35,432 bases of DNA from Macrostomum lignano (Eukaryota): contig NIVC01004769.1 in assembly GCA_002269645.1 (NCBI GenBank), positions 1 to 35,432 of the forward strand, in the 5' to 3' direction. Every line of letters begins with the position of its first letter. Position 1 is the first letter of the stretch. The position numbers and the translations under genes were made by a program. A model generated the notes under the pieces. It made no database searches and was not told the origin of the DNA. It saw only the letters and a list, made by a program, of their open reading frames with translations. Shown piece after piece: positions 776 through 29,897 of the stretch.

Positions 776-6180
<5,405 letters not shown>

Positions 6181-6942: not shown

Positions 6943-7419
6943 GTGTCAAGAAAAGACAGTTTAAAATACACTAGTAATTGTAATGTTGGCCTTCCTACCT
7001 TCCTACCAGCTACTGCAGGCGCACTCACGATGGCAGGAGCCACTATCTGCTTGGCAAATGAATTCAAGGAGAACAATAGCCACAAAATTTCCCGAAAGCA
7101 AATTTTCCCGTGCAGAAAATTTGAAGTGGCTTTGGAAGCGACAAAACGGCCCTTTTCAGTAACTACCATTTGGAAATTTGAGCAATTCAAGTTGGCTGAG
7201 AAGAGCCACTACAGATGCAGCTGGCACGGGAAACAAGTGGAAGCCAATATTCAGGTGTTAACTGTCAACGCAGAACTGTATTTGATGAAATTTGAGGCTA
7301 AAATAGACTCAATTGTTCTCCAACATCCCCAGCTAACACTCGGAACGCAACTAGCTGAAACTCTCAGCAACAGATGGCAAGAATGGAAAAAGCCCTTTTT
7401 CGCAAGCCTTATACTATAA
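6943..7419 (+). other. Unassigned open reading frame (up to 158 codons; first ATG at 7030)
   Basis: Stop-free frame in a higher-GC patch just upstream of channel copy 1. No recognisable motif. Confidence 0.2.
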
Positions 7420-7516
7420 ATACAAGACCGCATGCAGCTCCCCTCGTTGAAAAGAACCCACAGTAAATGATTCAGAGAGTCCTCGTTGTGACTCAAATTT
7501 TGATTTGTTACTCAAA

Positions 7517-8802
7517 ATGCATCTAAACGCTGAGCAGCTGCAGTGCCTTGTCACCATCTACATTCTCCTTGTACTGTGCAACAAATTCTCGATGGGGAGG
7601 TAAGCACCGACCCGGAAGCTGATCTCATATTTTATCTGAAGAACAACATCACCAAGTACAGCCCGCTATTGCGGCCGCTTCTCAACTCTAGCGAGATTCA
7701 TTACATTAACATGGACATTTCCGTGACTCAGCTAGTGTCTGTGGACAGCGCCAAGCAGAGTGTGAAAATTTCTGCACTCACTTTAGCCAGATGGCTTGAG
7801 GAGCGACTAGTATGGGATCCGGCCAGCTTTGGGAATATTACGACAATCAACTGGAACGCGGATGACATTTGGTTCCCAGTTATCTTGATGTACAACGGCA
7901 TCGGCGACAACCAAGTCCTAGCGAAACAGATACCGGTGTATCTGACCTCTTGGACGCCTAACGCAACGTTTGTTACGGCTACGTGGCGCAACGATATTGA
8001 ATTCTCCTGCCAATTCGATATGAGAAAATTTCCGTTGGACCAGCACACCTGCGAGCTGCTGTTCTTTATTAGCGACCAGGGCCACGGCAATAGAATGGTG
8101 CAGCCGAAACGATTAGTGCCGTCGTTCAACGTGCTCGGCACCTACCAGCCCAACAGCGAATGGATCATGCTGAACGCTAGCACCAGGGCGGAGCCGCAGC
8201 TGTTCGAAGTGTTCGAAGGCAGGCCGCCAATTCCGTTGCCAACATTTCTTTTTCGATTTGAAATCAAGCGAGTGTCGATTTATTATTTTGTTAATATTAT
8301 CACGCCGCTATTGCTGCTGACGCTGCTCCAAGTGCTGGTGTATTTTGTACCAGTGGAGTCCGGCGAGAAGCTGGGATTCGGCATCACAATCATGCTCAGC
8401 TACACCGTGTTCCTGCTGCTTCTAGCCGATATCGTTCCAAAGTCAGAAGATACGCCAGCGATCGCTTCGTTCATCACGGCCGCTATGATAATTTCTACCG
8501 TATCCCTGCTACTGACTTCCGTGATCATGCGATTCCAATTCGCCCCGGAGGGAGCGCGAATGCCCGCCTGTGTCCGGGCCGTAGCTGTTCGCTTTTTAGG
8601 CCGCCTGTTCTGCGTCAGCGGCGCCTCCGGTCCGCCAGTCGACAGCGTGACTAGCATGCGCCGAAAATCCGACCAAGATAACGATTGCGTCAGATCCGAT
8701 TGGGTGGTGGCAGCGCACGCTTTGGAGCGTCTCATGGTGGCCCTCGGGGTGGCTGCCACAGTCGCTATCATCGGGTACTTCGTCATCAGGCCGTACACTT
8801 AA
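7517..8802 (+). CDS. Cys-loop ligand-gated ion channel subunit (nAChR-like, non-alpha, predicted cation-selective), copy 1; signal peptide lies in a different frame from the main ORF
   Basis: Cys-loop CQFDMRKFPLDQHTC, four TM segments and ESGEK before M2. ATG at 7517 encodes the signal-like MHLNAEQLQCLVTIYILLVLCNKFSMG, one base out of frame with ORF 7543..8802 at the GGGG run 7594-7597. Confidence 0.9.
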
Positions 8803-9749
8803 GATCGACGGAAATCGTCAAGTAAAGTCAACCGACTCGTTGAAACTACGAATAATTTCTGCTTCTATTCTTTTTTTTTATTAAAATCTTTCTCACTATA
8901 GAAAACTTATACCGTACTTACCCTAGTTTCTTGAATCACACGGTGATTAAATATCCCAGCTTCACAAGCTGTTTGCTTTGATTTTGAAAAAAAAACTTTA
9001 GGTAAAATTGAGATCCTTTAATCCCTTTCAGGTTTGAGAATTGAGAACCTGTTCTAAAAATTTCTGGTCGTATATAATTTCTTGTCCAAAGTCTGTCACT
9101 GATGAAACTCCATATCTCAATATACTAAAACTTACTAATATAAATACCTACGCACGTTCCCACGTAAATATATCTGACTCCTAAACCGTCTGTGTATCAA
9201 AAGACTTGTTTAACAGACTACAAAGACTAAATAGATTTATTTTCACTATATAGACTTGCAATTTCTGTCTGAAACCGTGCAATCAATCACCCGTTCGACG
9301 AATCAAGTTGTTCAAACTAGAATTTTTTTATTTTAACGCAAGTCCTAGAAACTTTCGTCCGCTCCTCTCCATGGTATGATTGAATTTCAAACGAAAGGAC
9401 TGAAATTGAGAGTAAAGAAAAGACGAGAGCTAAATCTTGTGAACTCCATACGCTCAGCTCCCTATTATCAAACAAGAGCTAAACCGACTACAGTAAGCTA
9501 ACAGCAATTCTTCACAAGAACGAACAAGAATTTAATCGAGCTGAACACACACAATTCCCTAAACGGTAAACACAGCCGGAAAAGGTGGCGTACGGGTTTA
9601 TAGCAGAATGTCAAACAATGGTAGGGAAGGAGAGGAAGCGGGATCTTGAAATATAGCATATAGAGACCAAGCATTACCAATACTCTCGACAAGAAAGTTG
9701 AACAAGAGAATCGAGACTGTCGGAGCCATCGAGACCTTCGGTATAAGTT

Positions 9750-11051
9750 ATGTCGGCGACCACGACACTTCTTGTTGCTATCTGTCTACTTGGACTCCCA
9801 ACTGAAGCGCAACAACCACCAGACTACGAAGCTGAATTAATCAAATATCTGAGCAACAACATAAGCAATTTTAGTCCGCTACTCAAGCCAATAAAAGACC
9901 TGAGAAGACAAATGAAAATCAGAGTTGGCTGCATGGTTACCGGCCTAGTCTCCGTGGACAGCGCCAGACAAAGTGTAAAGCTGGCGGTTTTCCTACACAC
10001 GAGCTGGCCAGAAGAGCGACTTGTCTGGAACGCGTCACAGTTTGGCAACTTGTCTGTGGTGAGCCGGGATGTCAGCCAGACATGGTTTCCCGTGATCATT
10101 ATTTACAATGGCATCGGAGACAACCAGTTGCTGCTGCCTCAGATACCAGTTTTCTTGAGATCGATGTCGCCAAATCTAACGCTAAGCACAGCGGCTTGGC
10201 GCAGAGAACTGGAATTCACCTGCCAATTCGACATGACCAGGTTCCCGCTAGACAGGCACATCTGCGATGTGGAATTCTTTTTTAGCGATCAGGGTCATAA
10301 CAATAAGCTGATTCGTCTAGTGGACAGTAAGCCCGCATTCAACACCCTTGGAATTTACAAGGAGAACGGTGAATGGCAAATGATCAACGCTACTTCGCTG
10401 GTAGAGTACAGAAAGTACAATGTTTTCAACTCTATGCCGCCTGTTCTGCTGCCAACCTACATTGTTCGAATTGAAATCCAGCGCGTGTCGGCTTACTACT
10501 TCATGAACATCATCACGCCGCTGCTGCTGCTGACTCTGCTCCAAGTGCTGGTGTACTTTGTGCCTCTGGAGTCCGGTGAGAAGCTGGGATTCGGCGTCAC
10601 AATCATGCTCAGCTACACCGTGTTCCTGCTACTACTAGACGACATTGTGCCGAAGTCTCGAGCAACTCCGGCGATCGCTTCGTTCATCACGGCGGCTATG
10701 ATTGTATCTGGCGTATCCCTGCTGCTGACCTTAATTATGATGCGATTCCACTTCGCTGCGGGCGGAGCTCGAATGTCAGCCTGTGCTCGGGTCGTGCTCG
10801 TTCGCTTTTTAGGCCGCCTGCTCTGCGTTAGCGCCGCCGGCTCGCGGGTCGGCCAGCAGACTCCAAGCAATCACTGCAGCGAGGTTAGCATCAGGAAGGC
10901 TGACGTTGATGAAACCGATGATGCTAGGACTACCGACCAGCAGTCCGAATGGATGGTGGCAGCGCACGCATTGGAGCGACTCATGGTTGTGCTTGGAGTT
11001 GCTGCTACAGCCGCCATTATTGGAGTCTTTGTTGTGAAACCGTATATTTGA
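9750..11051 (+). CDS. Cys-loop ligand-gated ion channel subunit (nAChR-like, non-alpha, predicted cation-selective), copy 2, single exon, 433 aa
   Basis: Signal peptide MSATTTLLVAICLLGLPTEA, Cys-loop CQFDMTRFPLDRHIC, ESGEK-M2 and M1-M4. Colinear paralog of copy 1. Confidence 0.93.
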   Translation: MSATTTLLVAICLLGLPTEAQQPPDYEAELIKYLSNNISNFSPLLKPIKDLRRQMKIRVGCMVTGLVSVDSARQSVKLAVFLHTSWPEERLVWNASQFGNLSVVSRDVSQTWFPVIIIYNGIGDNQLLLPQIPVFLRSMSPNLTLSTAAWRRELEFTCQFDMTRFPLDRHICDVEFFFSDQGHNNKLIRLVDSKPAFNTLGIYKENGEWQMINATSLVEYRKYNVFNSMPPVLLPTYIVRIEIQRVSAYYFMNIITPLLLLTLLQVLVYFVPLESGEKLGFGVTIMLSYTVFLLLLDDIVPKSRATPAIASFITAAMIVSGVSLLLTLIMMRFHFAAGGARMSACARVVLVRFLGRLLCVSAAGSRVGQQTPSNHCSEVSIRKADVDETDDARTTDQQSEWMVAAHALERLMVVLGVAATAAIIGVFVVKPYI

Positions 11052-11547
11052 CCTGAAAAACACTGGAACGATTTATGATGATTAGTTACCTTAACTACTG
11101 AGGATATAATCTCCAGAATTTGTTGGAGAAATTAGTCGAAAATGCACCAGAACATCATTCTCGTTGGGTAACTTCGATTAAATCTCGTAGATAATACATG
11201 TAGGTATCTCTACTTGTAGCTGGGCCCCCTGGAATCAGTTGGGTCACATTGGGTCTGGTTCAGTCATCAGTAAATGTACTTTTATGCTTCTTACACGAAG
11301 TTAATAAATTCTGGAACATCATCCTTACTACCATCATTCTCATTACAATTACAAATCAAATAAGTAGCTGTGGAAAATATAAAACGAATATGTTTTAGTA
11401 ACTAAGCGATAAAGAAGAGGAAAATCTCGCACAAAAAAGTGTAAACACGAGGGCTTTTTATTAACGAAAAAGAAAAATGCCTTTTTTATATCCATGCAGG
11501 ACGTAGACGGCAAAACAGAAAGTAAGACCGAATTTTGATAAAATTTT

Positions 11548-14500
11548 TCAAGCTTTCCGAGGCTCGCTGCCCATCCTGGGAAACAGCGAACCAAATAAAT
11601 TGGACAATAGCTCGTCGAGTTCAGCGGCGCCTCCAGCCGACGTGCCGTCCAATGGTTTGACAGCATCAGCGATTCGTAACAACGCAGCGTATTGAGCTCG
11701 CGACAGACGCAAATACTGCAGATTCTGTTGGGCCCTGGCCCAATAGTCCGGCAGGAAGGCTGGCAGCTTGTGCAACTCGCCGGGTTGTTCAGCCAGTGCC
11801 GACGGGCGATGATGATGAAGGTCGCGGACGGCTGCAGGACCGACGGATAAAGTGGTGTAGTTACCAATTTCCTCTAGCTCAAAACTGAACCACTATAAAA
11901 AGTTTATTAAAGCCAGGGGCTGTGTACAACCTGTCGCACTTTACCGGTAAGCGACACTGTCACACAATCGGCAAGAGGCATTACTGCCAATTCCGCCGAT
12001 ACGTTCGCAGTCATACGCATAAACTCACACAGGAGTATACAGCGTCGCCCTAACTTGTTTATCATTAGACATGTACACTTCACTGTGCCTTTGGGATTGG
12101 CTTTCAAGAGCATTAATTTTACGAGCAGAGCCAAGCCGAGATTCTTCCAATTTAGCCCGAAATTAATATTGACAGCACTTGGAATCGAGTCTGGGTCGCT
12201 GGCATATCATGGCTGTGGTCTTTTTTCTCCTGGCAACCTACGCGAACTCAAAAACTTATAGCGGTCACCCAAGTGGCAGATCAGCTCAGAGGAAAGCGCC
12301 ACACACTCATTAGGGGCTTAACACGAAAACTTTTTCCAAGGGCTGTCTGTATGAGTATTCTCCAGAATGAATGCCAGGATGCCACAACCCTGTTGCAATT
12401 ATTATTATTATTATTAATACAGTCACCACCTGCAAAATCGAATCCTTAGACTGCACAGCTCGAGTCAAAAACTCTGACTGCTCATCGCCTTGGATGCTTC
12501 CAATTCTTTTTCTATTTTCGAAGTCTCATTGACGATTCGTATAGATCATCTACATAAGCTTCGATCATAAAAACACTCACGCAGCAGAGTCTTGGCGCCT
12601 AATAGCGTGAACACGGTGGCCTCGAAATTCAAATCCTCCACTCCGATGCTCAGCCTGATGCGGCCTTCTAGAATGAACACGGCGTAATCGGCGGGCACGC
12701 CTCGACGATAAATTGTATTGCGATCGTCGTCTCCGTGACTGTTGGGTATAGAGACACGTTAACGGCATTCATTGATTACGGGCTAGGCTGGTTTAACTAC
12801 TAACAGTAGAAAAAAGGAACATAAATATGAAAAAACTGTAATATTGCAATTTGACTTTCAAAAGTGTAACTATTCACTCACATAAACATATGCTTGATGA
12901 GAACTTTTTCCTGGAACATTCGTTCCAGCACAATTTCGGGAATAACTCGCTTGCCAAAGAGGTCACTGTGTTCTGCGAGGAGAAAATATTGGTGAGCTAT
13001 TATTTTATTAACTATTACACAGACAATTGGCAATGAAATAACTTCATTAGATAAGTAGGAAAGATCTGTTCTGGGAGGCTGGCACAGCAACTGAGGATCT
13101 GGGAGGCTGGCACAGCAACTGAGGATCTGGGAGGCTGGCACAGCAACTGAGGATCTGGGAGGCTGGCACAGCAACTGAGGATCTGGGAGGCTGGCCCAGC
13201 AACTGAGGATCTGGGAGGCTGGCCCAGCAACTGGCACTCTGGGAGGCTGGCTCAGCAACTGAGGATCTGGGAGCTAGCCAGCAACTGAGGATCTGGGAGG
13301 CTGGTGGCCCAGCAACTGAGGATCTGGGAGGCTGGCCCAGTAACTGAGGATCTGGGAGGCTGGCCCAGCAACTGAGGATCTGGGAGGCTGGCCAAGCAAC
13401 TGAGGATCTGGGAGGCTGGCTTAGCTACTGGGGTTCTGGGAGGCTGGCCCAGCAACTGAGGATCTGGGAGGCTGGCCCAGCAACTGAGGATCTGGGAGGC
13501 TGGCCCAGCAACTGAGGATCTGGGAGGCTGGCTCAGCAACTGAGGATCTGGGAGGTTGGTGGCCCAGCAACTGAGGATCTGGGAGGCTGGCCCAGCAACT
13601 GAGGATCTGGGAGGCTGGCCCAGCAACTGAGGATCTGGGAGGCTGGCTTAGCTACTGGGGTTCTGGGAGGCTGGCCCAGCAACTGAGGATCTGAGAGGCT
13701 GGCTCAGCAACTGAGGATCTGGGAGGCTGGTGGCTCAGCAACTGAGGATCTGGGAGGCTGGCCCAGCAACTGAGTATCTGGAAGGCTGGTTGCCCAGCTT
13801 ACGGATCGCCAGGCAGTGCACCGCGGCCATCCGGAGCTGAGCTGGAACCTGCATGCCGGTGCTGCCAGCCAGGGCCAGTTCGCGCCAGGACACTCGAGGC
13901 ACGCGTGGCGGCGGACGGTGCGACGGTTGGGCTGCAAAATTCGATTGATTTATTAATAAAGCATCTCATCATTATGCAGCCAATTGTCAGAGAGGGGCTT
14001 CTTGGGAATTGCCAATTCATGTCAATTCTGCTGACCCCTGATTACAAAACCGTACACAGATGAGTACGAAAGCATGCTAGTACAGCGGTCCTGATTTTTA
14101 ACCGTCGGGCGTGAACAGTCACTATGCCTTGAGGGGTTGCCCCTCATGGCTATGAATCGCACGACAATCTTTAGCCAATTTTTGTGCACACACAAGCCCC
14201 GAAGGAATTTGGCTTTGCCCCTGTCTCTTAGGTGGGCGCCCCTGTCTCTTAGGTGGGCGCCCCTGTCTCTTAGGTGGGCGCCCCTGTCTCTTGGGTGGGC
14301 GCCCCTGTCTCTTAGGTGGGCGTCCCTGTCTCTTAGGTGGGCGCCCCTGTCCCTTAGGTGGGCGCCCCTGTCTCTTAGGTGGGCGCCTTTGTCCCTTAGG
14401 TGGGCGCCTTTGTCTCTTAGGTGGGCGCCTTTGTCTCTTAGGTGGGCGCCTTTGTCTCTTAGGTGGGCGTCCCTGTCTCTTAGGTGGGCGCCCCTGTCTC

Positions 14501-17500
14501 TTAGGTGGGCGTCCCTGTCTCTTAGGTGGGCGCCCCTGTCTCTTAGGTGGGCGCCCCTGTCTCTTAGGTGGGCGCCCCTGTCTCTTAGGTGGGCGTCCCT
14601 GTCTCTTAGGTGGGCGCCCCTGTCTCTTAGGTGGGCGCCCCTGTCTCTTAGGTGGGCGCCCCTGTCTGGGTGACAGGTCACAGAAAACTCTCACAAGAAA
14701 CGTCAGTCTCGTCCTCAATCTCTTCTTGAATAATCTCTTCCAAGATGTCCTCAAGCGTTACCATGCCAACCGTGGACTCTTCGTTCACTTCGACTCCAAT
14801 TGCATCCGTTTCTCTATGCCTAACAATTGCCATATGCACTCGGTTGCTCAAGAAGAGTTTCAGCGCGCTATCCAGAGTATCCGTGTCCATAACTGAGTGT
14901 ACTTTTCTGTTGAAATATTCGCAGACTAAATCCACTCGCATTGGCGCGTCGCGACTAACTATAGTTAGATCTTTGAAATTGAGCACGCTGATAATGTTGC
15001 TCCGTTCGCGATCATAAATTGGTATCCTGGTGAAACCGGTCTCCCGGATCTGCTCAACTGTGAACGAGTCAATCAGGGTCTCAGCCGGTAGCATATAAAC
15101 TTCGCTTAGTCCGCGCATTACCTGACCAATCGTTTTATTCTGAAGCGATAGCGCGCCCAAAATTATGTTAGCCTCTGTCCGCTCCAGATTCTGGTTAGCT
15201 ATGAACTCCTTGAGCTTGTTGCGGTCGTACACCTGGTATAGGGTGCGTAGGATCCATGAGATCAATCAGTGGCTTTCCATCAGATCAATCAGTGACTTTC
15301 CATCAGATCAATCAGTGACTTTCCATCATATCAATCAGTGACTTTCCATCAGATCAATCAGTGACTTTCCATCAGATCAATCAGTGACTTTCCATCAGAT
15401 CGATCAGTGCATTTTTATCAGATCAATCAGTGACTTTCTATTAGATCAATCAATGTATTTCTATCAGATCAATCAGTGTATTTCTATCAGATCAGTCAGT
15501 GCATTTTCATCATATCAGTGACTTTCTATCAGACTACTCAGTGAATTTCTATCAGATTAATCAGTGAAATTCTATCCGATCAATTAGTGACTTTCTATCA
15601 GATCAATCAGTGACTTTCTATCAGATTAATCAGTGACTTTCTATCAGATTAATCAGTGAAATTCTATCCGATCAATTAGTGAGTTTCTATCAGATCAATC
15701 AGTGACTTTCTATCAGATTATTCAGTGACTTTCTATCAGATCAATCAGTGAATTTCTATCAAATTAATCTGTGAATTTCTATCAGACCAATCAGTGACTT
15801 TCTATTAGATCAATCAATGTATTTCTATCAGATCAGTCAGTGCATTTTCATCATATCAGTGACTTTCTATCATATCAATCAGTGACTTTCTATCAGAACA
15901 ATCAGTGACTTTCCATCAGATCAATCAGTGACTTTCTATCAGAACAATCAGTGACTTTCCATCAGAACAATCAGTGAATTTCCATCAGATCAATCAGTGA
16001 CTTTCTATCAGATCAATCAGTGACTTTCTATCAGATCAATCAGTGACTTTCCATCAGATCAATCAGTGACTTTCTATCAGATCAATCAGTGACTTTCTAT
16101 CAGATCAATCAGTGACTTTCTATCAGATTAATCAGTGACTTTCTATCAGAAAGATCAGTGAATTTCTATCAGACTATTCAGTGAATTTCTATCAGAAAGA
16201 TCAGTGAATTTCTATCAGAAAGATCAGTGAATTTCTACCAGAAAGATCAGTGAGTTTCTATCAGATCAATCAGTGAATTTCTTTCAGATCAATCAGTGAC
16301 TTTCTATTAGACCAATCAGTGACTTTCTATCAGACCAATCAGTGACTTTCTATTAGATCAATCAATGTATTTCTATTAGATCAGTCAGTGCATTTTCATC
16401 ATATCAGTGACTTTCTATCAGATTAATCAGTGACTTTCTATCAGATTAATCAGTGACTTTCTATCAGATCAATCAGTGAATTTCTATCAGATTAATCAGT
16501 GAATTTCTATCAGATCAATCAGTGACTTTCCATCAGATTAATCAGTGACTTTCTATCAGAAAGATCAGTGAATTTCTATCAGACTATTCAGTGAATTTCT
16601 ATCAGAAAGATCAGTGAATTTCTATCAGAAAGATCAGTGAATTTCTACCAGAAAGATCAGTGAGTTTCTATCAGATCAATCAGTGAATTTCTTTCAGATC
16701 AATCAGTGACTTTCTATTAGACCAATCAGTGACTTTCTATCAGACCAATCAGTGACTTTCTATCAGACCAATCAGTGACTTTCTATTAGATCAATCAATG
16801 TATTTCTATTATATCAGTCAGTGCATTTTCATAATATCAGTGACTTTCTATCAGATTAATCAGTGACTTTCTATCAGATTAATCAGTGACTTTCTATCAG
16901 ATCAATCAGTGAATTTCTATCAGATCAATCAGTGACTTTCCATCAGATCAATCAGTGAACTCGCTCAGAGATCACTTCTTAATGATTCCACAACAACTTG
17001 CCTGCAATGAAAATGACCTCAACATGCAATACACCTCGTACTGCGATACAGAAATCGCAAGCAATGAGATAAAATGAAAAGAGGACCGTAGTTAATTCAA
17101 GGCTCGATATTATTAGGATAAAAAGGCTGGCATTATTGAAAGCGACGAAAATGTCGCATCTGTTAACACACTGTAGACTCTGTACATGTAGGCTTCAGTC
17201 GTATCCTTCATCATCACTGCCGAAAATGTCTCTAGGCGTTAAGCTTACCTGTCTCAAATCCTGGCCGAGTATCTTGTCCAACAGTACGGACAATGGAAAG
17301 CTGATTGGAGCAGTTAAAGCCATAAACAGTATGGTAATTGGCAGGGTAAATGCGCCAATAGCCAATCCGTGACGGGTGCACACAGCCTGAGGAATAATTT
17401 CGCCAAACAGCACAATACCAAGAGATGCCGCTATCACAGTGGTTATACCATCGCCAATTAGCGAGCTCAATATGATTGACAGGGTGGTGTTGACAACAAC

Positions 17501-18758
17501 GTTGCCTAGCAACAGGCTGCACAGCAAGAAATTGCCCCTCTTTCGAACCGGGATTATTCTCTTGGCGTGCGCCCGTTCTGACGGGCTGCCGGCGCGGCAG
17601 ATGATCTTTAGTTCACCAATGTCCAAAGCCATCAGGCCGAGGTTCAGGCCCGAGAACAGGCCTGCATGTTTAGGCCAGAATTGATGCATAATATTTCAAA
17701 TTCAACATGATTTTATAAACTCTAAATGTTATTAATCTTTGCACAAACCTAATATTGTCTTCATCAAACTGTTTCAGACTCTTCAAGCTTCATCAAACCG
17801 CACCCAGACTCTCCTAGCTTCATCAAACTGCACCTAGACTCTTCAAGCTTCATCAAACTGCATTCAGACTCTCCTAGCTTCATCAAACTGCACCTAGACT
17901 CTCCTAGCTTCATCAAATTACATCGAGAGTCTCCTAGCTTCATCGAATTGTACCTAGATTCTTCAAGCTTCATCAAACTGCATCCAGACACTCCTAGCTT
18001 CATCATCAAACCGCACCTAGACTATTCTTGCTTTATCAACCTGCACCTAGACTATCGTAGCTTCATCAAATTGTACCCAGTTCTTCAAGTTTGGGTTAAC
18101 TAAATTTAGACTTTCCCAGCTTAAATCCAAGTGGCTTAAAACCCAATGCACTGGCCCACAGAGTATTCCAGCTTCCTATCTTACCGGACAGTAACATCAG
18201 AGCCACTGTAAAGCAAATCTTAGCCCACAAAGGCAGTGTTTCTTTAGTCACGTAGAACCTTGGTCCGCCGTCAGAGCCACCAGGATAGCGCCACCGATGC
18301 TCTTCAGTAGAATCCGATTTTTTTGCCACCTTTGTAGTCCAGTTACCGTGTAGACACAGTAGTAGATAACCGCCCGACGGCATTGGCACCAGATCGCTAG
18401 GCACGGTTACCATAGCAACAGCTGTTAGACCAGTTTCTCCAGGTTTCAATCTGAAACTAGTAGGCAGTTTGGCATCCAGACACAGGCCATTGTCGTGATG
18501 GGTATTGGCAAAGGCTAGCCGGTCGAGTGCTTGCAGACCGCGACCGTAAAGACGTATTGATAGTTGACCTCCCAGTGGCACCTTTTGGTGACCGCCAGAC
18601 TCAGCGGCCTCCCAGCTGAGGCTGTCCCCAGAGCCATCCGACCTGGGGAATGCCACGGCGTCGGAAACTAACACATCATCGGAAGCGGCGGCGGCTGTGG
18701 CAGCGACTGAAACAGCTATGGCGGCCAGGCTGGCAAAGACTAAGGCCAGAATAGTTGG
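11548..18758 (-). CDS. CNNM: CNNM/ACDP metal (Mg2+) transporter, 7 exons: complement(join 18758..18185, 17661..17249, 15232..14695, 13931..13803, 12972..12882, 12738..12581, 11873..11548); initiator Met not found in the first exon
   Basis: The exons join in frame through GT-AG (2229 nt to TGA). DUF21 motifs SGLFSGLNLGLMALD, LLCSLLLGNV and FGEIIPQA; CBS pair (GFTRIPIY...GMVTLEDILEEIIQEEIEDETD); CNBH domain (IYRRGVPADYAVFILEG, FLPDYWARAQQNLQYLRLSRAQY). The last three small exons are somewhat less certain. Confidence 0.92.
13071..13798. repeat. 28-bp minisatellite, about 26 copies (CTGGGAGGCTGGCMCAGCAACTGAGGAT), in CNNM intron 4
   Basis: Visible tandem array with 28-nt period, starting a few bases from the donor at 13802. 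Confidence 0.97.
14217..14667. repeat. 21-bp minisatellite, about 21 copies (TAGGTGGGCGYCCCTGTCTCT), in CNNM intron 3
   Basis: Visible tandem array; same unit family as 5472..5722. Confidence 0.97.
15259..16959. repeat. About 23-bp minisatellite, roughly 70-75 copies (ATCAGATCAATCAGTGACTTTCY), in CNNM intron 2
   Basis: Visible 1.7-kb array with variant units and an approximately 410-bp higher-order duplication. Confidence 0.97.
17759..18090. repeat. 30-bp minisatellite, about 11 copies (TTCATCAAACTGCACCTAGACTCTCCTAGC), in CNNM intron 1
   Basis: Visible tandem array with 29-30 nt period; it produces the spurious MKLGESRCSL-repeat ORF. Confidence 0.95.
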
Positions 18759-21700
18759 CTGGAAATACAAGAAAATCTAATTAACTTTTCAAAGTTCTTT
18801 AACCGCCTATCAAGGTTGTCTTTCGCTATTGCCCAGTTCGGTCAATATATAAGCAGACTCAAGTCCCGCGTGTTCCTCTAGCTCTGGTGACAGGTGTTGT
18901 GTACAAGTTATCTTGTTCTGTGGATCAGAAAATTTCCTATATATAGGGAAAACCATGCAAAAGACATAATACATATACACTAGAGCGAGAAAAGAACTCC
19001 TTCTCGGCTACAATAGCTGTTGTGACAAGAAGCAAACTTAACAGTTCAAAATTATCGATCGTTGTCAAACAGAATCTAGGATTAGCATATTTGAATCAAA
19101 CTACACCAAGTCACCAAGTGCGCAGTGAATTCCAGCCCAGTATTGACTTTTGAGTGACGCAACTTGCGCCACGCGACGCAGAGTTGGGCTGGGTGATGTG
19201 GGATTGGGAAGAGTGGAGGGCGAAGATTGGATGGATTGAAGCTTCCGCCCGGTTTTCATTGTTTTTTTCAAGAATTTTTTAATACCAAAATGGTTGGCCA
19301 GGTGATAGACTCTGGTTGAAAGATACTGCTCACCGGGGGCAAAGGGTGGCGACTTTTCAATGTTGCTGAGTATATTTCTCAGACCCTGAAGATGGCCCTT
19401 GACGGACCGAAATGTGTTGGCTGATTTATTTAACTAAAGCAACGTATGTTGGTTTTTTGGTTTTTATTTCAGTTAAATTAATGTTAGCTAGTTAAGCTGT
19501 AGTTTGCAGGGCCGAAGGTCGTTGCAATTCGAGGCGGTGGCGTACGCAGGGGGGGGGGCAGGTTCTCCGATAAGTAAAATAAGCAACAACTTTGTCGACA
19601 TCATCCCACGACGGGCGCTGAGGAAATTCTGGTCATTCCGCTGACTCCTTAGCACATTCAAGCGCGCCAATACTGTACGCAGGCACACACACTCGCTCAC
19701 CGTCACAGGCATATACACTCACTGCGTCTTTAGAATAGGCCTTTATGTGCGTGAAGCGCAGTATAATTTTCGTGCATGAACTCCAAATTAAATGGAATCT
19801 AACATACTTTAGTGCAATTTTTTAAATCTGAGTTAATCTGCCCCTGCAAAGAGCATTGTTTAAAAAGTTGATGTAATTTGAACAAATGACATGATGGGAA
19901 AACTAAAAGAAAGAAATAGCACACAAACCAATTTTTAATAAAGTCAAGAATTACATTGACCTCTGTAGTAAAACTGTTCCAGTTTTGTTGTAAATTAAAA
20001 GTTTTTATCTTTTTTCTACTTTTACTTTAGCTAAAAACAGGAGACAGGAGCCTTCTTAAGAATTAAACTCACTATTTCTAGAATTGAAACTAGATGATGA
20101 TAGATAAATTGATAGAGCCACTTATTTTTAGTACATAGGATATCATATAGTGCTTTCTAAATAAAACTAGTGTATACTACAAATTTACTAAACAATTGAA
20201 TATAATGTTGAATATTCTATTTTATAAAAAAGAAATATAAGCCTGCATTAATACATAAAAATGAACACATTCAACAATCAGTAAATCAGTAACAAAATTG
20301 AACATACAAATTTTCCAAACTTATTTAAACTTTATTTTTTAATAAATTTTATAAAGTTGAAACAAAATTTAAGTTTTTTGAAAATATCATTTTTATTTAA
20401 CAAAATAAATCGAAAAAACACCCTTTTATTACCAAGTATTGTATAAAATGTAATTAAGACATATGTTAACAATAAAGAAGAATCACTATTGGACAGTATT
20501 TTTCATAGAAATTAGAGGTTTATTATGTTTCTTAGCTATCAACGTTTAAAAAAATTCACTTAAAATTTGATATATACATTCATACATCACTAAGCACTTG
20601 GAAAAAAAGGAAATGAATAATTTTTACTTAATTAATAGCTCTAATTTCAATAAGGACGACAAAAGGGACAAAGATAATATAGCTGCATGAACTTTTTATG
20701 GACCACAAAACGGTAGATCAATTAAGAGGTTGGCTCTCATAGTTTTTTCCTTGCTTTTTATTGATAATCTAAAAAGTCACGACTAATTAGTCGTAAACAC
20801 ATGCATTCTGCACGTGTAGTAATCTGCACGCAATGTACAGTTAAGTTAGTTACGTTTTAAATTATCGTGCCAACAGTCACAACATCTAAACAAAGCTTCC
20901 ATGCTAAATAATATAAGCTTACTTTTTTCTGTCCCCTAAACTTTTAAACAAAAAAAACTAAAAAATGTAAGCATAAGATTCATGTATATATTTCAATGTG
21001 TGGTACCCGAAAAACGGAAAATAATTCAAAATTTCGGTTTTTGGCGCCAAATTTCGAGTAAAGTATTTTAAGTAGATCATGCTCAGTGTTTTAATTAGAT
21101 GCTTATAGTCTGGCCCAGGGACACTGATTCCCAAAACAATATGCAAAATTTAGGAATTTGTCGTTTTATATTTTTGGTTTTAAAATTTTAATTGTACCCC
21201 TGCTGATATATAAAATCCAACGCCACTGTGCGCAACGCCACTGTGCTGAAAAATTAGGGACAAAACTTGGCTGAAATGCCTGAACGTCTACGAGAATCGA
21301 ATTAGGAGGGGAAAACTGTAAAATCAAAAGTATGCTTGCTTTGACTTTTCTAGTAAATTATTTGAAAATTAAGTCGTCATCTAGAATTTATTAGAATCTA
21401 TAGTTAACTGGCGATTTGTATGTGCACATGATGGCAGTCAGTTTTCCAGCAGTAAGTTTGTCGGAATTCAATTTTTGGAAGGCAGTAGCTAAGCTTTCTT
21501 TTTAGATCCTGGCGTAGAGTATATGTAAATCGCACTGTCACGTACATACAACTGCACGTAGTACAGGTTAGTCTTGCTAAATTTCAGTGTACAACAATCG
21601 GACGTCGCGGCGACTTCGGCCGTCATTTCAGCCGAAATCATGACGTCGTTATATCCGTCAATGAAATGCAAAAGTACATATTTGTCAGCAGCATCGATAG

Positions 21701-23070: not shown

Positions 23071-24065
23071 TTAAGCCTTCTTCTTGCATGCGAAACGGAG
23101 TCGCTCATGACAGCGAGCCGATTTGATTTTTCGACCGTTCAGCGCGACGCAGTTTGTCACGAGGTCGTTGTTGGGATTGTCCGTCTGCCAAGCTGGGAAG
23201 CCTCTGTAGTCACCTGACCTATCAGACCACCTGTAGCACACGGAAGCTCCAGTTGAGTAGTCGATCCTGCACGGATTGAGCTTTAGCAAGCCAGTCCAAA
23301 CGTCCACCGGGCACTCGTCGGTGCTCAAATCCAGCAGGATGAGCGCGCGCACCTCAAGGTCGTTGTGAAGCGACGCCACGTGGGCGCCGCGACCGTTGCA
23401 GTAGAAATCGGCCTCGATGTACGTAGCCGCAAACTTCGGCATGAAGAAGCAGTAGCCGTTGAGATACTTCCAGTTGGTCGGGCAGGGCGTCGGGGCCGGG
23501 GTGCCGGATCCCAAGTTGGGAACTTTGCAAACAAACTTCTGCTTGGCGTGATAGAGATTGTTATACCAGAACCTGTCTTCAAGCGAAATTAGCGGCTGGT
23601 GATAGCCAATAATTCTAGAGAAGTTGTGCGCGTGGTACGAACTGTTGCTCGTCTGACCGTCTGACCATCGGTAGTTGTCTGGCTCTCTCAGCTTGTCAAC
23701 GTCGACGGCGTACCTTCCAGTCCAGACGCTTTCGCAGTACGTCAGCTTGCTAACAAAGATGTTCTCAGCTTTGTCGTAATGCTAGCCAGGTAGCCACCTT
23801 GCCTCTTGCAGTATTCATTTGCAGTGTACCAGTAGTCACGGTTTTCCACATATAGATAGCAATAATCGCGGAAGACAACCCACGACTTGTTTCTGGAGCA
23901 TTGTCCAAAGAAGATTTCATCTTGTGGCGGCGGCGGCGGCGGCGGTGCAGCAGCCGCCTTGACAGGGACAGCGGCCTTCAATGGCTGAGCGAGCGGTTTT
24001 ACACTAGCAGCAGCGTTGCTTGAAGCAAAGGCAAGCGTCAGGATAATTAGCAGTGCAGCTTGCAT
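23071..24065 (-). CDS. Secreted protein with two C-type lectin-like domains, intronless, one frameshift near 23775
   Basis: Signal peptide MQAALLIILTLAFASSNA and a polyproline linker. CTLD1: WVVFRDYCY...YCKRQGGYLASI, continuing after a 1-nt shift as DKAENIFVSKL...VWTG...YRWSDG...FVCK, in frame with ORF 23071..23514. CTLD2: CPTNWKYLNGYCF...VWTGL...YRWSD...NCVAL...CHERLRFACK. Confidence 0.88.
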
Positions 24066-24799
24066 GCTTGACTAGGTATACAATGTCTAGCTGACTACAA
24101 GCTTAGCTATGGCACCTTAGCTATGGTATACTGTATTTATAGACAGCTTGGTTGTCATGGTCAACATAACAGGTCTAAAATGTCTTATCTTTTCCATGCT
24201 CGTAAAATGGCTACAACATTTTTCGACCAAGTCTCAGGGATGTTAAGCAAAAAAGCTTTATCAGTCGTTTTTAATGATCTGCTTTTTAAGAAATGGCGCG
24301 ATTTCATTAGCAAAAAATTTAAAAGAAAAAAGAGAGGTGTGTCGCGACTCCTCTAGCCAATGTTTTTCTGCCGGCCAGGACGAAATTTTTTAAAAGAAGT
24401 TCTTATCAGCCCGACTTCGCTGATTTTCTTTAACTAGCTAGCTAACTAAGAATTTGCGAAGTTTTATCTCACTCTAAGCTGAAAAAATTCTCGCATACAG
24501 TTCAACTCAAATTCATATATTAAACAGTTTATAGGCTTTCCGGTCTCGTTTACAATTTTTGGAAATCTAGAATCTCGAATCTATAAATTCATGTTTGACG
24601 CATTTTTGCGGACGGATGTAAAATCATTTTGAAGAAATGACTTTGTTCTCATGAGTTAGAACCTTGTTTGCCAACACTGTTAGTTTAGTCTGTTGCATAG
24701 GAAAATAATAATGACGCTAATATTATTAATACATATTGAGTATCGTCAATACGATAATTTCAGACACAGATCGCTACAAAGCTCGCCTCCTGCAGTTTC

Positions 24800-27700
24800 A
24801 TGGAGACTGTTCAGTTGACTGTGACTCTGTCCAGGTCTCCGAATTTCGGCTTAGGCATCGAAATATCCGGAGGCATTGACAGTCGACCGATGCACCCCGT
24901 GGCTGGCATCGACGAGGCGCCAGGAGGTGTTTATGTTTGCACGGTGATTTCAGGCGGCCCGGCTGACAAGGTCCTCAAGCCGGGTGACCTGCTGCTGGGC
25001 TGCAATGGTTCCTCGATGCGTCGTGTAACTCACGATGAAGCCATCGCGATGCTGCAGCGAAGTCCTGTGGTCAACCTGCTTATCGAGCGGACTCTCAATG
25101 CCAGGCATCTGGAATCGTCGGACCGGGGAAGCCTGACTTCCGTGAGGACCCCGTTGGCGGCTGTACAAATGGATCGTGCATTCTGGACGGCAAGGAACTG
25201 CAAGACTTTGAAGTTGAAGTGACTTTCGCCGTGCTTTCAAAAGAAACGCGAAAGTGCCAGTTGGCCGTAGTGAAGACTCTGGCGAGAGTGTCAACGGTGT
25301 CTCAGTGGACCAACTGGCTTCTCCAGCTCATTTAGCACGGCTAGTTGACTCCGCCCAATCCAGCACACTAAGATTCAAGCTAGCCAATATGGGACCTTTG
25401 ACACTTTCCAAGGTGGGCTCACAATCTGCAATACAATCTAATGGAAGCGTCACAAATGAAAAACAGAAACAACAGCAGTATCCTTCACATGTAAGCCAGA
25501 AAATGGAAAAAGAGAAGTCTATAACTCTGTCTAATGGCATGAAAGAGTCAAAATATCTTCAAAAACTAAAAGGCAACCATACCAATTGCCTGGGAGCAGA
25601 CCTTGTCACTGGCCAGAAGATTACAACAACAAAGGGCTCAGCGGCGAACCTGGTGCGTCATCAAGACTGAGTGACCACCTGCAAACGACAAAAGCAGGTT
25701 CATATGAAAGTCGCGGAGCTCAGCTGCTTATTGACTCGCATGACGTCAGAGTTCAAGTACAGACTGCTGGTCAAGTAGATGGCCAAGCGGTTTCACGGGT
25801 TCACAGGGCTGTCAGTAACGGGCTAAATCCAAACAACTATTCGGATAGCAAGAACACGAGAAATCTTAATTCAGCTGAGCCGATTAGGCTTCGGAAATTT
25901 GGAACGACATCCGATCCGATGGAGCTTCGGCAACTGCCAGCTGAAGCCGAAGCTCGCAACGAAGTTCGACAAACAACAGGCTTGCAGCCAAAATTGGTAT
26001 TGTCAAGTACCGCTGCCTCTTTACTTCAAGAGCGTCCAATGACAGATAAACGACTTACCGAGACACAGCAAAGTAAGACAGAAGTCGGCAATGGCTACGG
26101 TAGACAATCAGATGTGCAGGGTGGTCGGAAATATGATCAATCGTTTGTGCACAGAAAAATAGTCAAGCCGACAATAAACCTCCCTGAATCAAATTTAGTC
26201 GTTATGGAGCAGTCAAAGTGGAGCTCCAGCGTAGATCAAAGTCGACCGTTAATATCTCAAACGTCCGGTGTATCCTCGGTGAGGGAGCCAAAGGAGAATC
26301 AGGAAATTGTTACGAAGCCAGCGCATTTTCCCGAACGTCAACAGCAAACAAACGCGTCAAATTATTTTCAAGACTTTTCATGGCCGGAAAAAAATTCCAG
26401 GTCTGTAAACGCAGAAGAGAGCAGAAATACCAATAATTCACGCACACTGATCAGTCAACCTCTTTGCGGGAGCTCTGACGCGAAGAAATCAAATAATTTA
26501 ATCAAGTCCGGATCCAATATTGTCAATAGAAAAGATATACAAGAATTCATGGATGAATTGCTGCCGCCAAGGCAAGCCGAGAAGGCGACTTTCTATCTAG
26601 GAAAGCCGTCAAGTGAAACATGGAATCTTCCATCGAGCTTTATCGAGGAATGTCAACACTTTTCGTCAAGTCGCACCCGATATAGTCAACTTACCGACGC
26701 GCCAGACAGTCAACCAGGCGAGAAGACCATCCGGGTCGTGCCCGACCTCGACGGATCGATCGGCGTGCGGCTGGACGGTGGTAATGCGGTCGGAATATTT
26801 GTGCGCCAGGTGACCCCAGGAGGCGCAGCCGATAGAGCGGGCATCCGTCCGAGCCACCGACTACTCGCCATCAACGAAAAGAGCATTGCCCGAGCCACGA
26901 AGGAAGAGGCCATGCTTTTACTACTGCGAGCTAACGGCCAAGAGCTTCAGGTTCGTTTGATTTACGACCAGGCTGGTTATCGAGCTTTCGTCGCGAGCCA
27001 AAAACCGGGGGAAAACTTCTTCGTGCGGGCGCACTTTACCTACTCGACCCCGGCGCCGGGCGAGACGGCTTTTAGACGAAATTCCGTGTTCCAGGTAAGA
27101 GATACTCTTGTAGGCGGAGTTGTTGGTAGCTGGGAGGCTGTGCGAGTTCATCCGCTGCCAGCCGAGACCGAGGCCTCTTTGATTCCGTGCGCAAATCGAG
27201 CTGACCAGATCGTCATGGCGAACGCTGGCAGCGAGCTGCCAACAGCGTTCCCTCCGTACGAGCGGGTGGCTCAACGCCGGGCAACCTTCTGCCGGCCTGT
27301 GGTCATATTTGGTCCGTTTGCCGACCGCGTGCGGAACTATTTAGTAGCTACTCATCCAGACAGGTTCGAGCTACCGAAGCATTCGGGACCCACAGTGAGT
27401 TTAAGTGACCTGATATTTATGAGTTGCTAATTTCCCGCTTATGCTCTGAAATTTCAACTTAAAACCCGGTGGTTCCACTGCAAGGTGAAACTATCCGAAA
27501 TTCGCTCTGTGGTTGCCCGCGGCAAGCATTGCGTCCTAGATTTGAACCCGGTGGCGGTGGACCGTCTCTGCTTTGCTCAGCTGGCTCCCATTGTGCTATA
27601 CGTGCGAGCCGCCAATCGCATGGTGGTGAAGAAGATTCGTAAAGAGCGCGGCTCGAAGCGTCTTTACCAAGACAGCTGCAGGATGGAGCGATGGTGCAGC

Positions 27701-28516
27701 CACCTATTCACTGGGGGTTCACGGTGGACCAGCCGGACTTGAACCCGTTGCTAGCTGGACTCGACGGCCTCATTCATCTGCAGCAGTGCCAGACACTCTG
27801 GCTGGCTGAAAAGGACGAACGATTAATCAGAGCGTTGTCGGAGCCCAGTCTCTGCTGTTCAAGTGAGTCGCCTTCAATGTGTTTTCTGAGTAGCAAATTG
27901 CTTTTTATGTATATAATAAACTATTCAGCTTAAACAATACTGAATCCGAGCAGAGTCCAACAAGCAAGACTTGGAGCTGCCAATCTATTCAATGATTAGT
28001 GAAAAACACGACAGAAACGAATGGATGACCTGCGTTCATCACATGGAGGATCAACAGTTTCAGCAGCGGTACAGCCCGTCAGGCAGCTGCTGCTCGAACG
28101 ATTGTCCGCTATCGGCTCACGTTGGAGACCCAGTGAAACTTCGCAAACAACAGCCCATAGCTCTATGCACAGGGCTGTTTGACTTTGCCGGAGGGCAGCT
28201 GCGCTGCTCGCGAACGGGCGCCACATTGGAGGTTCCACCCAACGCACTGGCTCTCGGGCGTCTTCAACGCCTTCAACTGGCTGTACTGGGCGCTCAGACG
28301 CTGCTTCTTGGACCACCTGGCGTTCGATTTCAAAAGCATCTGACTGTTCGCCTGCCGGCCGGATGGAGGAGCGGTCGAATTGTCACGGGAACTTTGAGCG
28401 AATCTGGAGAAGTGACCAAGTGGACAGAGCTGCACTGGCCGTTGGCTGCTGCGAAATCCAGCGAGGGCATTGTCAGCTATACTGGCGATACCTTTGCGGC
28501 CACAGGTGCAGCTTAG
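24800..28516 (+). CDS. TJP1: Tight-junction ZO-1/polychaetoid-like MAGUK (PDZ1, degenerate PDZ2, PDZ3, SH3, GUK, ZU5); introns 27395..27484 and probably 27863..27953; several frameshifts
   Basis: PDZ1 VTLSRSPNFGLGIEISGG; PDZ3 GSIGVRLDGGNAVGIFV; SH3 GENFFVRAHFTY; GUK PPYERV...RPVVIFGPFAD and KHCVLDLNPVAVDRL...HLFT; C-terminal ZU5 GLFDFAGGQL...GPPGVRFQKHLTVRLP. This domain order is diagnostic of the ZO family. Frames change about three times in 25100-25670 and once at GGGGG 27713-27717. Confidence 0.87.
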
Positions 28517-29447
28517 AAGATGCGTTTGAACAATTTTTACCTAGATAACGACGTTTTTTAATCATAAAAGTTTTCGCTGACTGTAGCTGGTACCCTACAG
28601 CAATCCGACGTCGATGAGTCAATTGTTTTGCATTACACCGACCTTCAGGTGACGTATGACGTCATTATCCCTCGGCGTAATTGAAAAATTCCCATTTTCA
28701 AGCGACATCGACGTCGGATACGTCGGATTTCTTTCATACGTCGGCGGAATTCGAAATTTTGCACTGGATAGTTACATTTTATGCACGCAGAAGTGGTTCT
28801 CACCAAGCACCTTGCGCTCAATATATAAATGCTCGACCCGAAGAGAAACAAAAGTAAATTTACGCTCGTATTTAGCTATTCACTAGAAAGAGTCCAAGTG
28901 TAATCTTTTACTCCCTCAAAAAATTGTATACACTTAGCATGAAAAACTTTGTCACTTTATAAGCAAAGCAAATACTCTTAGTTGCATGGCAATAGTCATT
29001 ATTATTACTATCCTTAGTATTAGCAATGCAGCGTACAGTAAATTCTATTATTATTTGATAAAATGTCATACTGAATCGTCATTGTACTTTGCGGATAGCG
29101 TATGCCGGAATAGATTTTTTGAAATGTAAGATGTTTTAAAATGTTTTTTGCGATTTCAAATACTTTCTTGTGACAATATACACAGCATGCGTTTACAGGC
29201 TCTGTGCACAAGTGTTGAGACACAAACTTCATACAGTGATGTCATGCATTTAGTTTTGCGATAAACGAAATTGGATGAAAGAAATTTATAAATCTTAGCG
29301 CTACAACTTAGCGCTGAAAACTGGAGAATTACAATTGATTTGGTGGGGGAGGTTATCGGAAGTCTCATTTCCAGTTAGCGTCATATATTGATTTGTCTAC
29401 TGTATGTGCGAAATAGTAGTAAAATACTTTGTGGAGCAAACTAAAAT

Positions 29448-29897
29448 AACGCTCGATATTCTCTATGGATGCGAGAGCTGGACTCTGGGGAAGAAAAGTA
29501 TGGAGACACTCACACCGTTTGAAATTAAATGCTACAGAATAATGCTAACGAATACCATGAAAGAGAAAAAGACAGATGCCTGGGTTTGGGGTAAATTGAC
29601 GGAGGTACTATTGGAAAAGGAACCAGAATCTGTAGAAGAGATTATCAATCAAATTAAGTTCAGATATTACGGACATCAGACGAGGAAGGGAGGGGTGGCA
29701 AATGTCTGTATTCGAGGAGGAATAGAAGGTAAAAGAAGAAGAGGAAGACCGAAAAGGCAGTGGAAGGATGACCTGAAGGAAGGACAATGGAAAGGTTAAG
29801 AAGAGCAGCGAAGGATAGGTAGTGGTGGCGGAAGCTGGCCTGCATAAATGGGTGCCCCCACAGCCATGACGGCTACGGCAACGAAGAAGAAGAAGAA
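29448..29897 (+). mobile_element. 5'-truncated non-LTR retrotransposon (RTE-like LINE) 3' fragment
   Basis: ILYGCESWTL...FEIKCYRIML...YYGHQTR...GKRRRGRPKRQWKDD is the typical post-RT C-terminus of RTE-like LINEs. It is followed by a short 3' UTR and a (GAA)5 tail at 29883-29897. No target-site duplication was seen. Confidence 0.85.

Follow-up and report, generated by a model that had tools for sequence, protein, structure and literature searches.

In this study, we analysed a 35,432-nucleotide stretch of the genome of the free-living flatworm Macrostomum lignano (GenBank assembly GCA_002269645.1, contig NIVC01004769.1, positions 1 to 35,432; hereafter the window) and found that two neighbouring genes on its forward strand, gene 1 and gene 2, are best explained as members of a small Macrostomum clade of pentameric channel subunits that derive from nicotinic acetylcholine receptors (nAChRs) and have intron-free coding regions, the two being old tandem paralogs within it. 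As the alignment of its members indicates, the ancestor of this clade had lost the Trp of loops B and D as well as the Cys-Cys and the second Tyr of loop C, four elements of the canonical acetylcholine (ACh) site, and its loops E, F and C had acquired insertions. The pore residues of cation type (-1' Glu, 9' Leu, 20' Asp) and the M1-M3 segments are near-frozen despite overall pairwise identities of 45-60% within the clade. The two proteins are probably, though far from assuredly, functional orphan cation-channel subunits that are not gated by ACh at the canonical site. An earlier reading made from the letters alone (the sequence-only reading) had described the same genes as tandem, intron-poor nAChR-like channels with a dismantled ACh site and had suggested that they belong to an independent, undescribed chemoreceptor expansion.

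Two long open reading frames (ORFs), 7543..8802 and 9750..11051, stand on the + strand in the ORF listing of the window, and the two genes lie 948 bp apart in the same orientation. Both ORFs match the Pfam families Neur_chan_LBD (E 7e-27 for gene 1 and 8.5e-22 for gene 2) and Neur_chan_memb (E 6e-19 and 2e-19, respectively) with scores above the gathering scores, and these two domains together with C-x13-C and four transmembrane (TM) helices identify both genes as members of the Cys-loop pentameric ligand-gated ion channel superfamily. When all PDB chains were searched, the closest solved structure was the human alpha7 nAChR (E 1.3e-37), followed among the sequence matches by alpha3, alpha4, muscle subunits and 5-HT3A, and the top sequence and fold matches taken together were alpha7, alpha4beta2 and muscle nAChRs. 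The SGEK filter, the 9' Leu, the 20' Asp and these nAChR-like top matches place the predicted channels on the cation-selective nAChR/5-HT3 branch. The pair is therefore where the sequence-only reading had put it, as the ORFs, Pfam and PDB matches agree, and the term intron-poor can be made more exact, for gene 2 and the mature part of gene 1 are each a single uninterrupted coding ORF.

The mechanically called ORF of gene 1 opens at 7543, and its mature part is counted here from 7603. Over its full length this mature part can be aligned with gene 2 and the M. lignano paralogs described below, gene 2 is collinear over 99% of its length with one of them (P0001, 434 aa), and the two window proteins share 59% identity over ~409 residues. 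Self-comparison of the window for repeats aligned gene 1 and gene 2 in the coding regions only, the flanks having diverged, and ATTAAA motifs occur downstream of the stop codons of both genes. An AlphaFold model, built from a 4-sequence alignment and used for topology alone (predicted local distance difference test, pLDDT, 60; predicted template modelling score, pTM, 0.46), predicted a helix at the N-terminus, a beta sandwich, M1-M3, a short helix following M3, a disordered loop and finally M4, and Foldseek matched this low-confidence model to nAChR chains at 20-23% identity and TM-scores of ~0.35. A scan of the window with Rfam gave zero matches.

Pore and ligand-site residues were compared in an alignment of both window proteins, alpha7, four relatives and five canonical top matches. 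The Cys-loop, the GEK filter and the M2 9' Leu are kept in both proteins, as had been claimed; M2 of the pair reads LGFG[IV]TIMLSYTVFLLLL with the 9' Leu, and the 18-residue M2 core is identical in all six family members save for one Ile/Val position. The ACh site has been taken apart: alpha7 W55 (loop D) corresponds to Leu in gene 1, Phe in gene 2 and L, I, Y or F in relatives, W149 (loop B) to the Ser of FF[FI]SDQ in both window genes, C190/C191 to Val-Phe in both and to L/I-I/F in other clade members, and Y195 to Leu in the pair. On the other hand, the loop A Tyr (alpha7 Y93) is retained in both, and Y188 is retained as Tyr in gene 2 or Phe in gene 1. The sequence-only reading was right about the missing vicinal Cys and about Leu and Phe at the loop D Trp; for loop B it had correctly seen the loss of the Trp, but the residue that replaces it is Ser, and the Asp that it named sits one residue later. 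Its Pro-rich loop C (GRPPIPLP, SMPPVLLP) is present, but among the relatives only in the window pair, and the M3-M4 loop is indeed short, ~51 aa in gene 1 and 63 aa in gene 2, where that of alpha7 has roughly 150 aa. As aligned, neither protein has the Cys-Cys or the full aromatic box of an alpha-type ACh-binding subunit, nor the loop D Trp of a complementary (non-alpha) one. The pair shares with human alpha7 (PDB 7KOO) the fold and topology, the Cys-loop, the Tyr of loop A, the first Tyr of loop C, SGEK, the 9' Leu and an acidic residue at 20', but is only ~22-23% identical to it, lacks W55, W149, C190-C191 and Y195, and carries inserts in loops E, F and C. A further peculiarity is an invariant W-R-R-E (gene 2 aa 150-153), found in all clade members on the strand before the Cys-loop (loop E), where alpha7 has P-P-G. 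Its Trp and two Arg, near the complementary face, could form part of a rebuilt pocket, perhaps for an anionic ligand.

A word-indexed protein search returned only two close relatives, P0001 (55% identity) and P0002 (48%). When 1.84 billion representative proteins were searched exhaustively with a HMMER profile, 11,627 matches were obtained, among which only P0002 (729 bits), P0004 and P0009 were close; the next single-domain matches were generic nAChR-like proteins at ~150-200 bits, which cluster look-up traced to a bivalve, a hemichordate, corals and an abalone, and the higher-scoring entries were multi-domain fused gene predictions. The clade motifs GEKLGFG, MLSYTVF, VSVD[ST]A and WRRE occurred in no HMMER match outside the clade. 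The 90% cluster of P0001 contains the M. lignano protein PAA92206.1 (BOX15_Mlig033226g1), and P0004 is a UniRef protein of the same species. P0002 and P0009 have UniParc identifiers only and were assigned to M. lignano by inference, P0009 being nearly identical to copy C of a second array. Clade members are thus already in public databases, under the name 'hypothetical protein'.

That second array was reached by exact-sequence look-up, which gave no match for gene 2, P0001, P0002 and P0169 and led to a locus for P0153 alone. The locus, on M. lignano contig NIVC01000059.1 (L001), encodes PAA92206.1 (UniRef100_A0A267H1R5) and holds three intact single-ORF paralogs on one strand, A (7863-9188), B (10001-11305) and C (12783-14105), with a C-terminal fragment of M3-M4 only (16393-16671) downstream of them. 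Copies A and C, which flank the annotated gene, are missing from the genes called at the locus, so that the public M. lignano annotation misses at least two intact family members there. PAA92206.1 and its neighbours belong to the same clade as the window pair (54-59% identity) and are like it in length, single ORF, same-strand tandem arrangement and near-identical M2. They differ from it in that their loop C is without the Pro-Pro motif of the window pair and that loop B is different in A, C and P0002; moreover, the neighbouring genes include GIPC1 there and PP1, CNNM and ZO-like genes in the window, which marks a different locus. The clade therefore counts at least six intact paralogs at at least three loci (the window pair, the three copies of the second array and P0002).

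In a neighbour-joining (NJ) tree, the clade received 100% bootstrap support; the window pair grouped with copy B (75%), and gene 1 and gene 2 were weakly sister (64%). W55, W149, C190/C191 and Y195 are missing from every one of the six members, in which Y93 and Y/F188 remain, whereas the top outgroup matches keep all of these residues. The six also have in common an insertion in each of loops E (4 aa, with N-x-T sites), F (3 aa) and C (4-5 aa), as well as His in place of the canonical Cys-loop Gln. Since the same losses are shared by all six members, the loss of the ACh site is, on this alignment, ancestral to the clade and older than the window pair. In the library searched, we found no description of the clade in work on Macrostomum nicotinic receptors or in flatworm Cys-loop phylogenies, and no paper mentioning BOX15_Mlig033226g1; the flatworm Cys-loop surveys that we found cover schistosome nAChRs, acetylcholine-gated chloride channels (ACCs), glutamate-gated chloride channels (GluCls) and a 'Cys-less' clade, and the clade described here is not among them. 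The schistosome 'Cys-less' clade (PMC9874803) was considered as a relative and ruled out because the window proteins keep the Cys-loop. With M. lignano proteins as the only close relatives, the suggested independence from cephalopods stands, and so does the word undescribed as far as that library goes, although the sequences are in public databases. The word expansion is too strong, since with this number of paralogs and loci the expansion is modest and, its synonymous sites being saturated, old.

Selection was estimated pairwise by the Nei-Gojobori method (NG86). Gene 1 and gene 2 are 50% identical in the extracellular domain and 86% in M1-M3, in agreement with the earlier statement that the extracellular domains diverge more than the pores, and their ratio of nonsynonymous to synonymous divergence (dN/dS, omega), a rough figure given the saturated dS, is 0.22 in the extracellular domain, 0.18 in M1-M3, 0.11 in M4 and 0.6-0.8 in the M3-M4 loop. 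The proportion of synonymous differences (pS) in the extracellular domain is 0.69-0.80 in every pair of the clade and hence saturated, which means that the duplications are old. These values show a coding sequence under purifying selection, with the start of gene 1 as a possible exception. The comparison of extracellular with TM dN/dS proposed by the sequence-only reading (0.22 against 0.18) thus gave no adaptive signal: the greater amino-acid divergence outside the membrane does not, by these estimates, come from a higher dN/dS, and there is no sign of adaptive divergence. Within the clade, mean identity is 34% in loop B, 24% in loop C and 35% in loop F, against 78% in M1, 93% in M2 and 73% in M3, whereas in canonical receptors, a far more diverged set, loops B (53%) and C (44%) are among the better conserved extracellular parts. 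We also observed that pS between gene 1 and gene 2 drops from ~0.7 in the extracellular domain to 0.2-0.45 from M1 into the M3-M4 loop (10452-10900, gene 2 aa 235-384), where other family pairs have an M1-M3 pS of 0.48-0.58. This stretch may be an old gene-conversion tract, which would inflate the contrast between pore and extracellular domain.

The start of gene 1 needs separate discussion. The sequence-only reading had let the pair begin at 7517, the position of an ATG, but this ATG and the signal peptide that follows (7517-7603) are in a frame one base off that of the main ORF, which offers no ATG of its own frame ahead of the conserved mature N-terminus TDPEADLIFYL. The two frames join at a GGGG run at ~7595-7598, and the rest of the gene, 399 codons, is intact. 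Since a single frame change is combined with an intact ORF of this length, it should be either a very recent one-base frameshift or an assembly error in homopolymer length. Three rescues were tried and rejected because they lose invariant residues or the signal peptide or, in one case, are implausible in size. A 29-nt GT..AG intron (~7570-7598) would set the frame right on paper but falls below the size of animal introns, and a 42-nt intron from GTAAGC (7600) would remove the clade-invariant segment D-x-E-x-x-L-x-x-Y-L. Flatworm spliced leaders can provide an AUG, but trans-splicing at the CAG acceptor near 7542 would give an N-terminus VPCHHLHSPC... without a signal peptide.

An out-of-frame start would suit decaying retrocopies or functionless pseudogenes, and so would their intron-free structure, the uncalled flanking paralogs and the truncated copy at the second array, and the observation that intron-poor nAChR genes more often have no or low expression (Jiao et al., PMC6896357). 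We nevertheless regard this explanation as hardly credible. Five intact ORFs of 400-440 codons (gene 2, mature gene 1 and copies A, B and C) have stayed open although their synonymous sites are saturated, which is impossible without selection and therefore excludes pseudogene status for gene 2; dN/dS is 0.1-0.2 in structured regions, the M2 core hardly varies among the six members, and the defect of gene 1 is a single frame change next to the G run.

If the pair instead encodes functional orphan subunits, as we favour, the proteins would assemble as cation-permeable pentamers in which canonical cation-pi binding of ACh would be impossible. Gating would then come from another stimulus, for which a small molecule, an ion or pH are candidates, acting on a remodelled extracellular pocket that varies among paralogs, and the differences in loops B, C and F would set specificity. 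The stimulus might be internal (a transmitter or metabolite) or environmental (chemosensation). Several points weigh against this explanation. Function is predicted from sequence, and a model with a pLDDT of 60 is too weak for pocket chemistry. That loops B, C and F vary so much might just as well reflect a disused pocket, and the saturated dS that makes the NG86 ratios rough applies here as well. As assembled, gene 1 separates its signal peptide from the mature protein by a frameshift. In addition, copies A and C of the second array are uncalled and the window proteins are absent from the protein collection searched, which is compatible with low expression.

Alternatively, the proteins might be accessory structural subunits that co-assemble with canonical flatworm alpha subunits and tune conductance, trafficking or desensitisation. 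An extremely conserved TM domain with drifting binding loops is what would be expected if only assembly and pore mattered, missing vicinal Cys are a general mark of non-alpha subunits, and the need for a partner subunit is one explanation offered for the silent annelid receptor Alpo4 (PMC10338036). On the other hand, selection on the extracellular domain remains purifying (omega 0.22), and the new clade-invariant motifs WRRE (loop E strand), VSVD[ST]A and YNG.G suggest that an extracellular function has been retained. Moreover, the Trp of loop B and that of loop D are kept in all six canonical sequences aligned and both are lost in the clade. Vertebrate non-alpha and accessory nAChR subunits generally keep these two Trp. 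For these reasons we think an accessory role unlikely.

The functional orphan explanation has precedents, since orphan or non-ACh nAChR-like receptors are known in lophotrochozoans (PMC10338036, PMC13174522). Intronless tandem nAChR-like genes with non-conserved ACh sites have been described there by Jiao et al. (2019, PMC6896357), whose survey of molluscs, annelids and cnidarians counted 42-217 genes per genome and did not extend to flatworms. Their arrays resemble the window pair in consisting of intron-free nAChR-type genes in two-gene or longer tandems with many ACh-site losses; in comparison with those expansions, the Macrostomum clade is small and its duplications are old rather than recent. 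The pair is likewise an intron-free same-strand tandem of nAChR genes in a lophotrochozoan genome and represents an uncharacterised flatworm clade of an already described type, the lophotrochozoan nAChR-like genes without ACh residues. Alpo4, from the annelid Alvinella pompejana, has no loop C Cys-Cys, is not gated by ACh and is an orphan receptor (PMC10338036), but it keeps the key aromatics, including the loop B Trp, and has a Met constriction at 16', whereas the window proteins have neither the loop B nor the loop D Trp and carry Leu at 16'.

A parallel in design exists with the chemotactile receptors (CRs) of cephalopods (van Giesen 2020, Allard 2023), which are described as nAChR-derived and intron-free receptors that have lost the signature ACh motifs and are presumed cation channels (PMC13174522, PMC10338036), and as forming a predominantly cephalopod clade (PMC13174522); their function was shown by experiment, in that sensory cells express them and compounds of low solubility gate them. 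Derivation from nAChRs, intron-free genes and loss of the canonical ACh residues are common to the CRs and the window pair, a shared design that is not proof of descent. The Macrostomum clade has close relatives only in Macrostomum. Given such relatives on one side and a predominantly cephalopod clade on the other, the similarity to CRs should be convergent. No CR structure was among the top 60 sequence or top 50 fold matches in the PDB, and membership inside the CR clade is very unlikely, the pair having been set apart without a CR sequence in the tree or alignment. The tandem arrangement of cephalopod CRs enters this comparison from the sequence-only reading.

A more specific reading, in line with the sequence-only one, would see in the pair environmental chemoreceptors, the flatworm counterpart of CRs, expressed by sensory cells in the epidermis or head and gated by external, perhaps hydrophobic, compounds; such receptors would be a subset of the orphan receptors considered above. 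In broad outline the recipe is like that of CRs (nAChR-derived, intron-free, tandem, ACh residues lost, cation pore; PMC13174522, PMC10338036), most replacements in the aromatic box are aliphatic or hydrophobic (L/F for W55, L for Y195, V-F for the Cys-Cys), and the binding loops differ among paralogs. However, the family is small (at least six), old and saturated in dS, unlike the recent birth-and-death turnover typical of chemoreceptor families. The extracellular dN/dS of 0.22 shows no excess over the pore region, and for many of the lophotrochozoan nAChR-like genes that lack ACh residues the site of expression is gill, gonad, embryo or an immune context, not sensory cells (PMC6896357). A chemosensory role of this kind therefore looks quite improbable to us. 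In an equally doubtful scenario, macrostomids would independently have turned a retrocopied nAChR into a small family of ionotropic chemoreceptors or of receptors for a new class of endogenous ligand; the pocket would be built from clade-specific parts, with loops C, E and F contributing their insertions and the strand of loop E its invariant WRRE, and this would be a second case, reached by convergence, of the route taken by the cephalopod chemotactile receptors.

If the genes do encode functional orphans, flatworms join the animals in which nAChR-derived receptors are known to have given up acetylcholine sensing. As a transgenic-tractable laboratory species, M. lignano lends itself to knock-down, reporter lines and oocyte expression as ways to de-orphanise them. 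The clade displays, in addition, a fixed scaffold (M1-M3, Cys-loop, loop A) against rewritable loops B, C and F. If its members are accessory subunits or barely expressed, the finding amounts to routine gene-family annotation.

Table 1. Features of the window, with positions counted from its first nucleotide
Feature	Position	Strand	Description
PP1-type Ser/Thr phosphatase exon	1676-2245	+	near left end of window
Minisatellite	5472-5717		21-nt unit
TATAAATA motif	7415..7422	+	~95 nt upstream of gene 1 ATG; candidate core promoter, judged by sequence
Gene 1 start	7517..7603	+	ATG and signal-peptide-like ORF MHLNAEQLQCLVTIYILLVLCNKFSMGR*, TAA at 7601-7603 (three-frame translation)
Gene 1 mature-protein ORF	7603..8802	+	399 aa and stop; extracellular domain, M1-M4
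Gene 1 Cys-loop	8008-8052	+	C-x13-C; from alignment
Gene 1 loop B	8062-8085	+	FFISDQGH; from alignment
Gene 1 loop C	8200-8247	+	from alignment
Gene 1 SGEK	8359-8370	+
Gene 1 M2	8371-8430	+
ATTAAA	8880..8885	+	78 nt past gene 1 stop; candidate polyadenylation signal, by motif
Gene 2 coding sequence	9750..11051	+	433 aa, intron-free; signal peptide, extracellular domain, M1-M4, stop
Gene 2 W-R-R-E	10197-10208	+	aa 150-153
Gene 2 Cys-loop	10221..10265	+	CQFDMTRFPLDRHIC; C-x13-C, His replaces canonical Gln of FPFDxQxC
Gene 2 loop B	10275..10298	+	FFFSDQGH; alpha7 W149 aligns with Ser179
Gene 2 loop C	10413..10460	+	KYNVFNSMPPVLLPTY; Val-Phe for Cys-Cys, Y195 to Leu, 4-5 residue insertion
Gene 2 SGEK and M2	10572..10643	+	LGFGVTIMLSYTVFLLLLDD; -1' Glu, 9' Leu, 20' Asp; SGEK itself 10572-10583
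Minisatellite	13070-13789		28-nt unit
Minisatellite	14217-14667		21-nt unit
CNNM-type metal-transporter gene	14678-18770	-	CNNM TM and CBS domains
Minisatellite in CNNM ORF gap	15259-16958		23-nt unit, 74.6 copies
Minisatellite in CNNM ORF gap	17759-18089		30/60-nt unit
C-type lectin domain gene	23071-23514	-	single ORF, 147 aa; Pfam Lectin_C, E 7e-7
ZO-like scaffold gene	24770-28516	+	PDZ and ZU5 domains in window ORFs
Polycystin-2-like channel exons	33776-34740	-	PKD_channel, Polycystin_dom; near right end of window

The sequence around the pair holds several other genes. Exons of the ZO-like scaffold gene are 95-100% identical to the M. lignano protein A0A1I8HH66, a match that by itself makes the host M. 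lignano (another haplotype, subgenome or assembly) or a sibling species; the M. lignano proteins that match this gene also carry a guanylate-kinase domain, and it has a paralog, BOX15_Mlig006899g2, that is 56-59% identical. The best match of an exon of the CNNM-type gene was likewise from M. lignano, at 78%. Pfam gave zero matches for the flanking ORFs 6943-7419, 11349-11867 and 29404-29799; the last of these (+), which ends in ...GKRRRGRPKRQWKDDLKE, resembles the C-terminal tail of a non-LTR retrotransposon ORF2. The minisatellites in the ORF gaps of the CNNM-type gene presumably lie in introns. Both 21-nt units contain the core CCCTGTCT(C)TTAG, and the minisatellites yield long spurious ORFs of repeat peptides on both strands (12878-14896).

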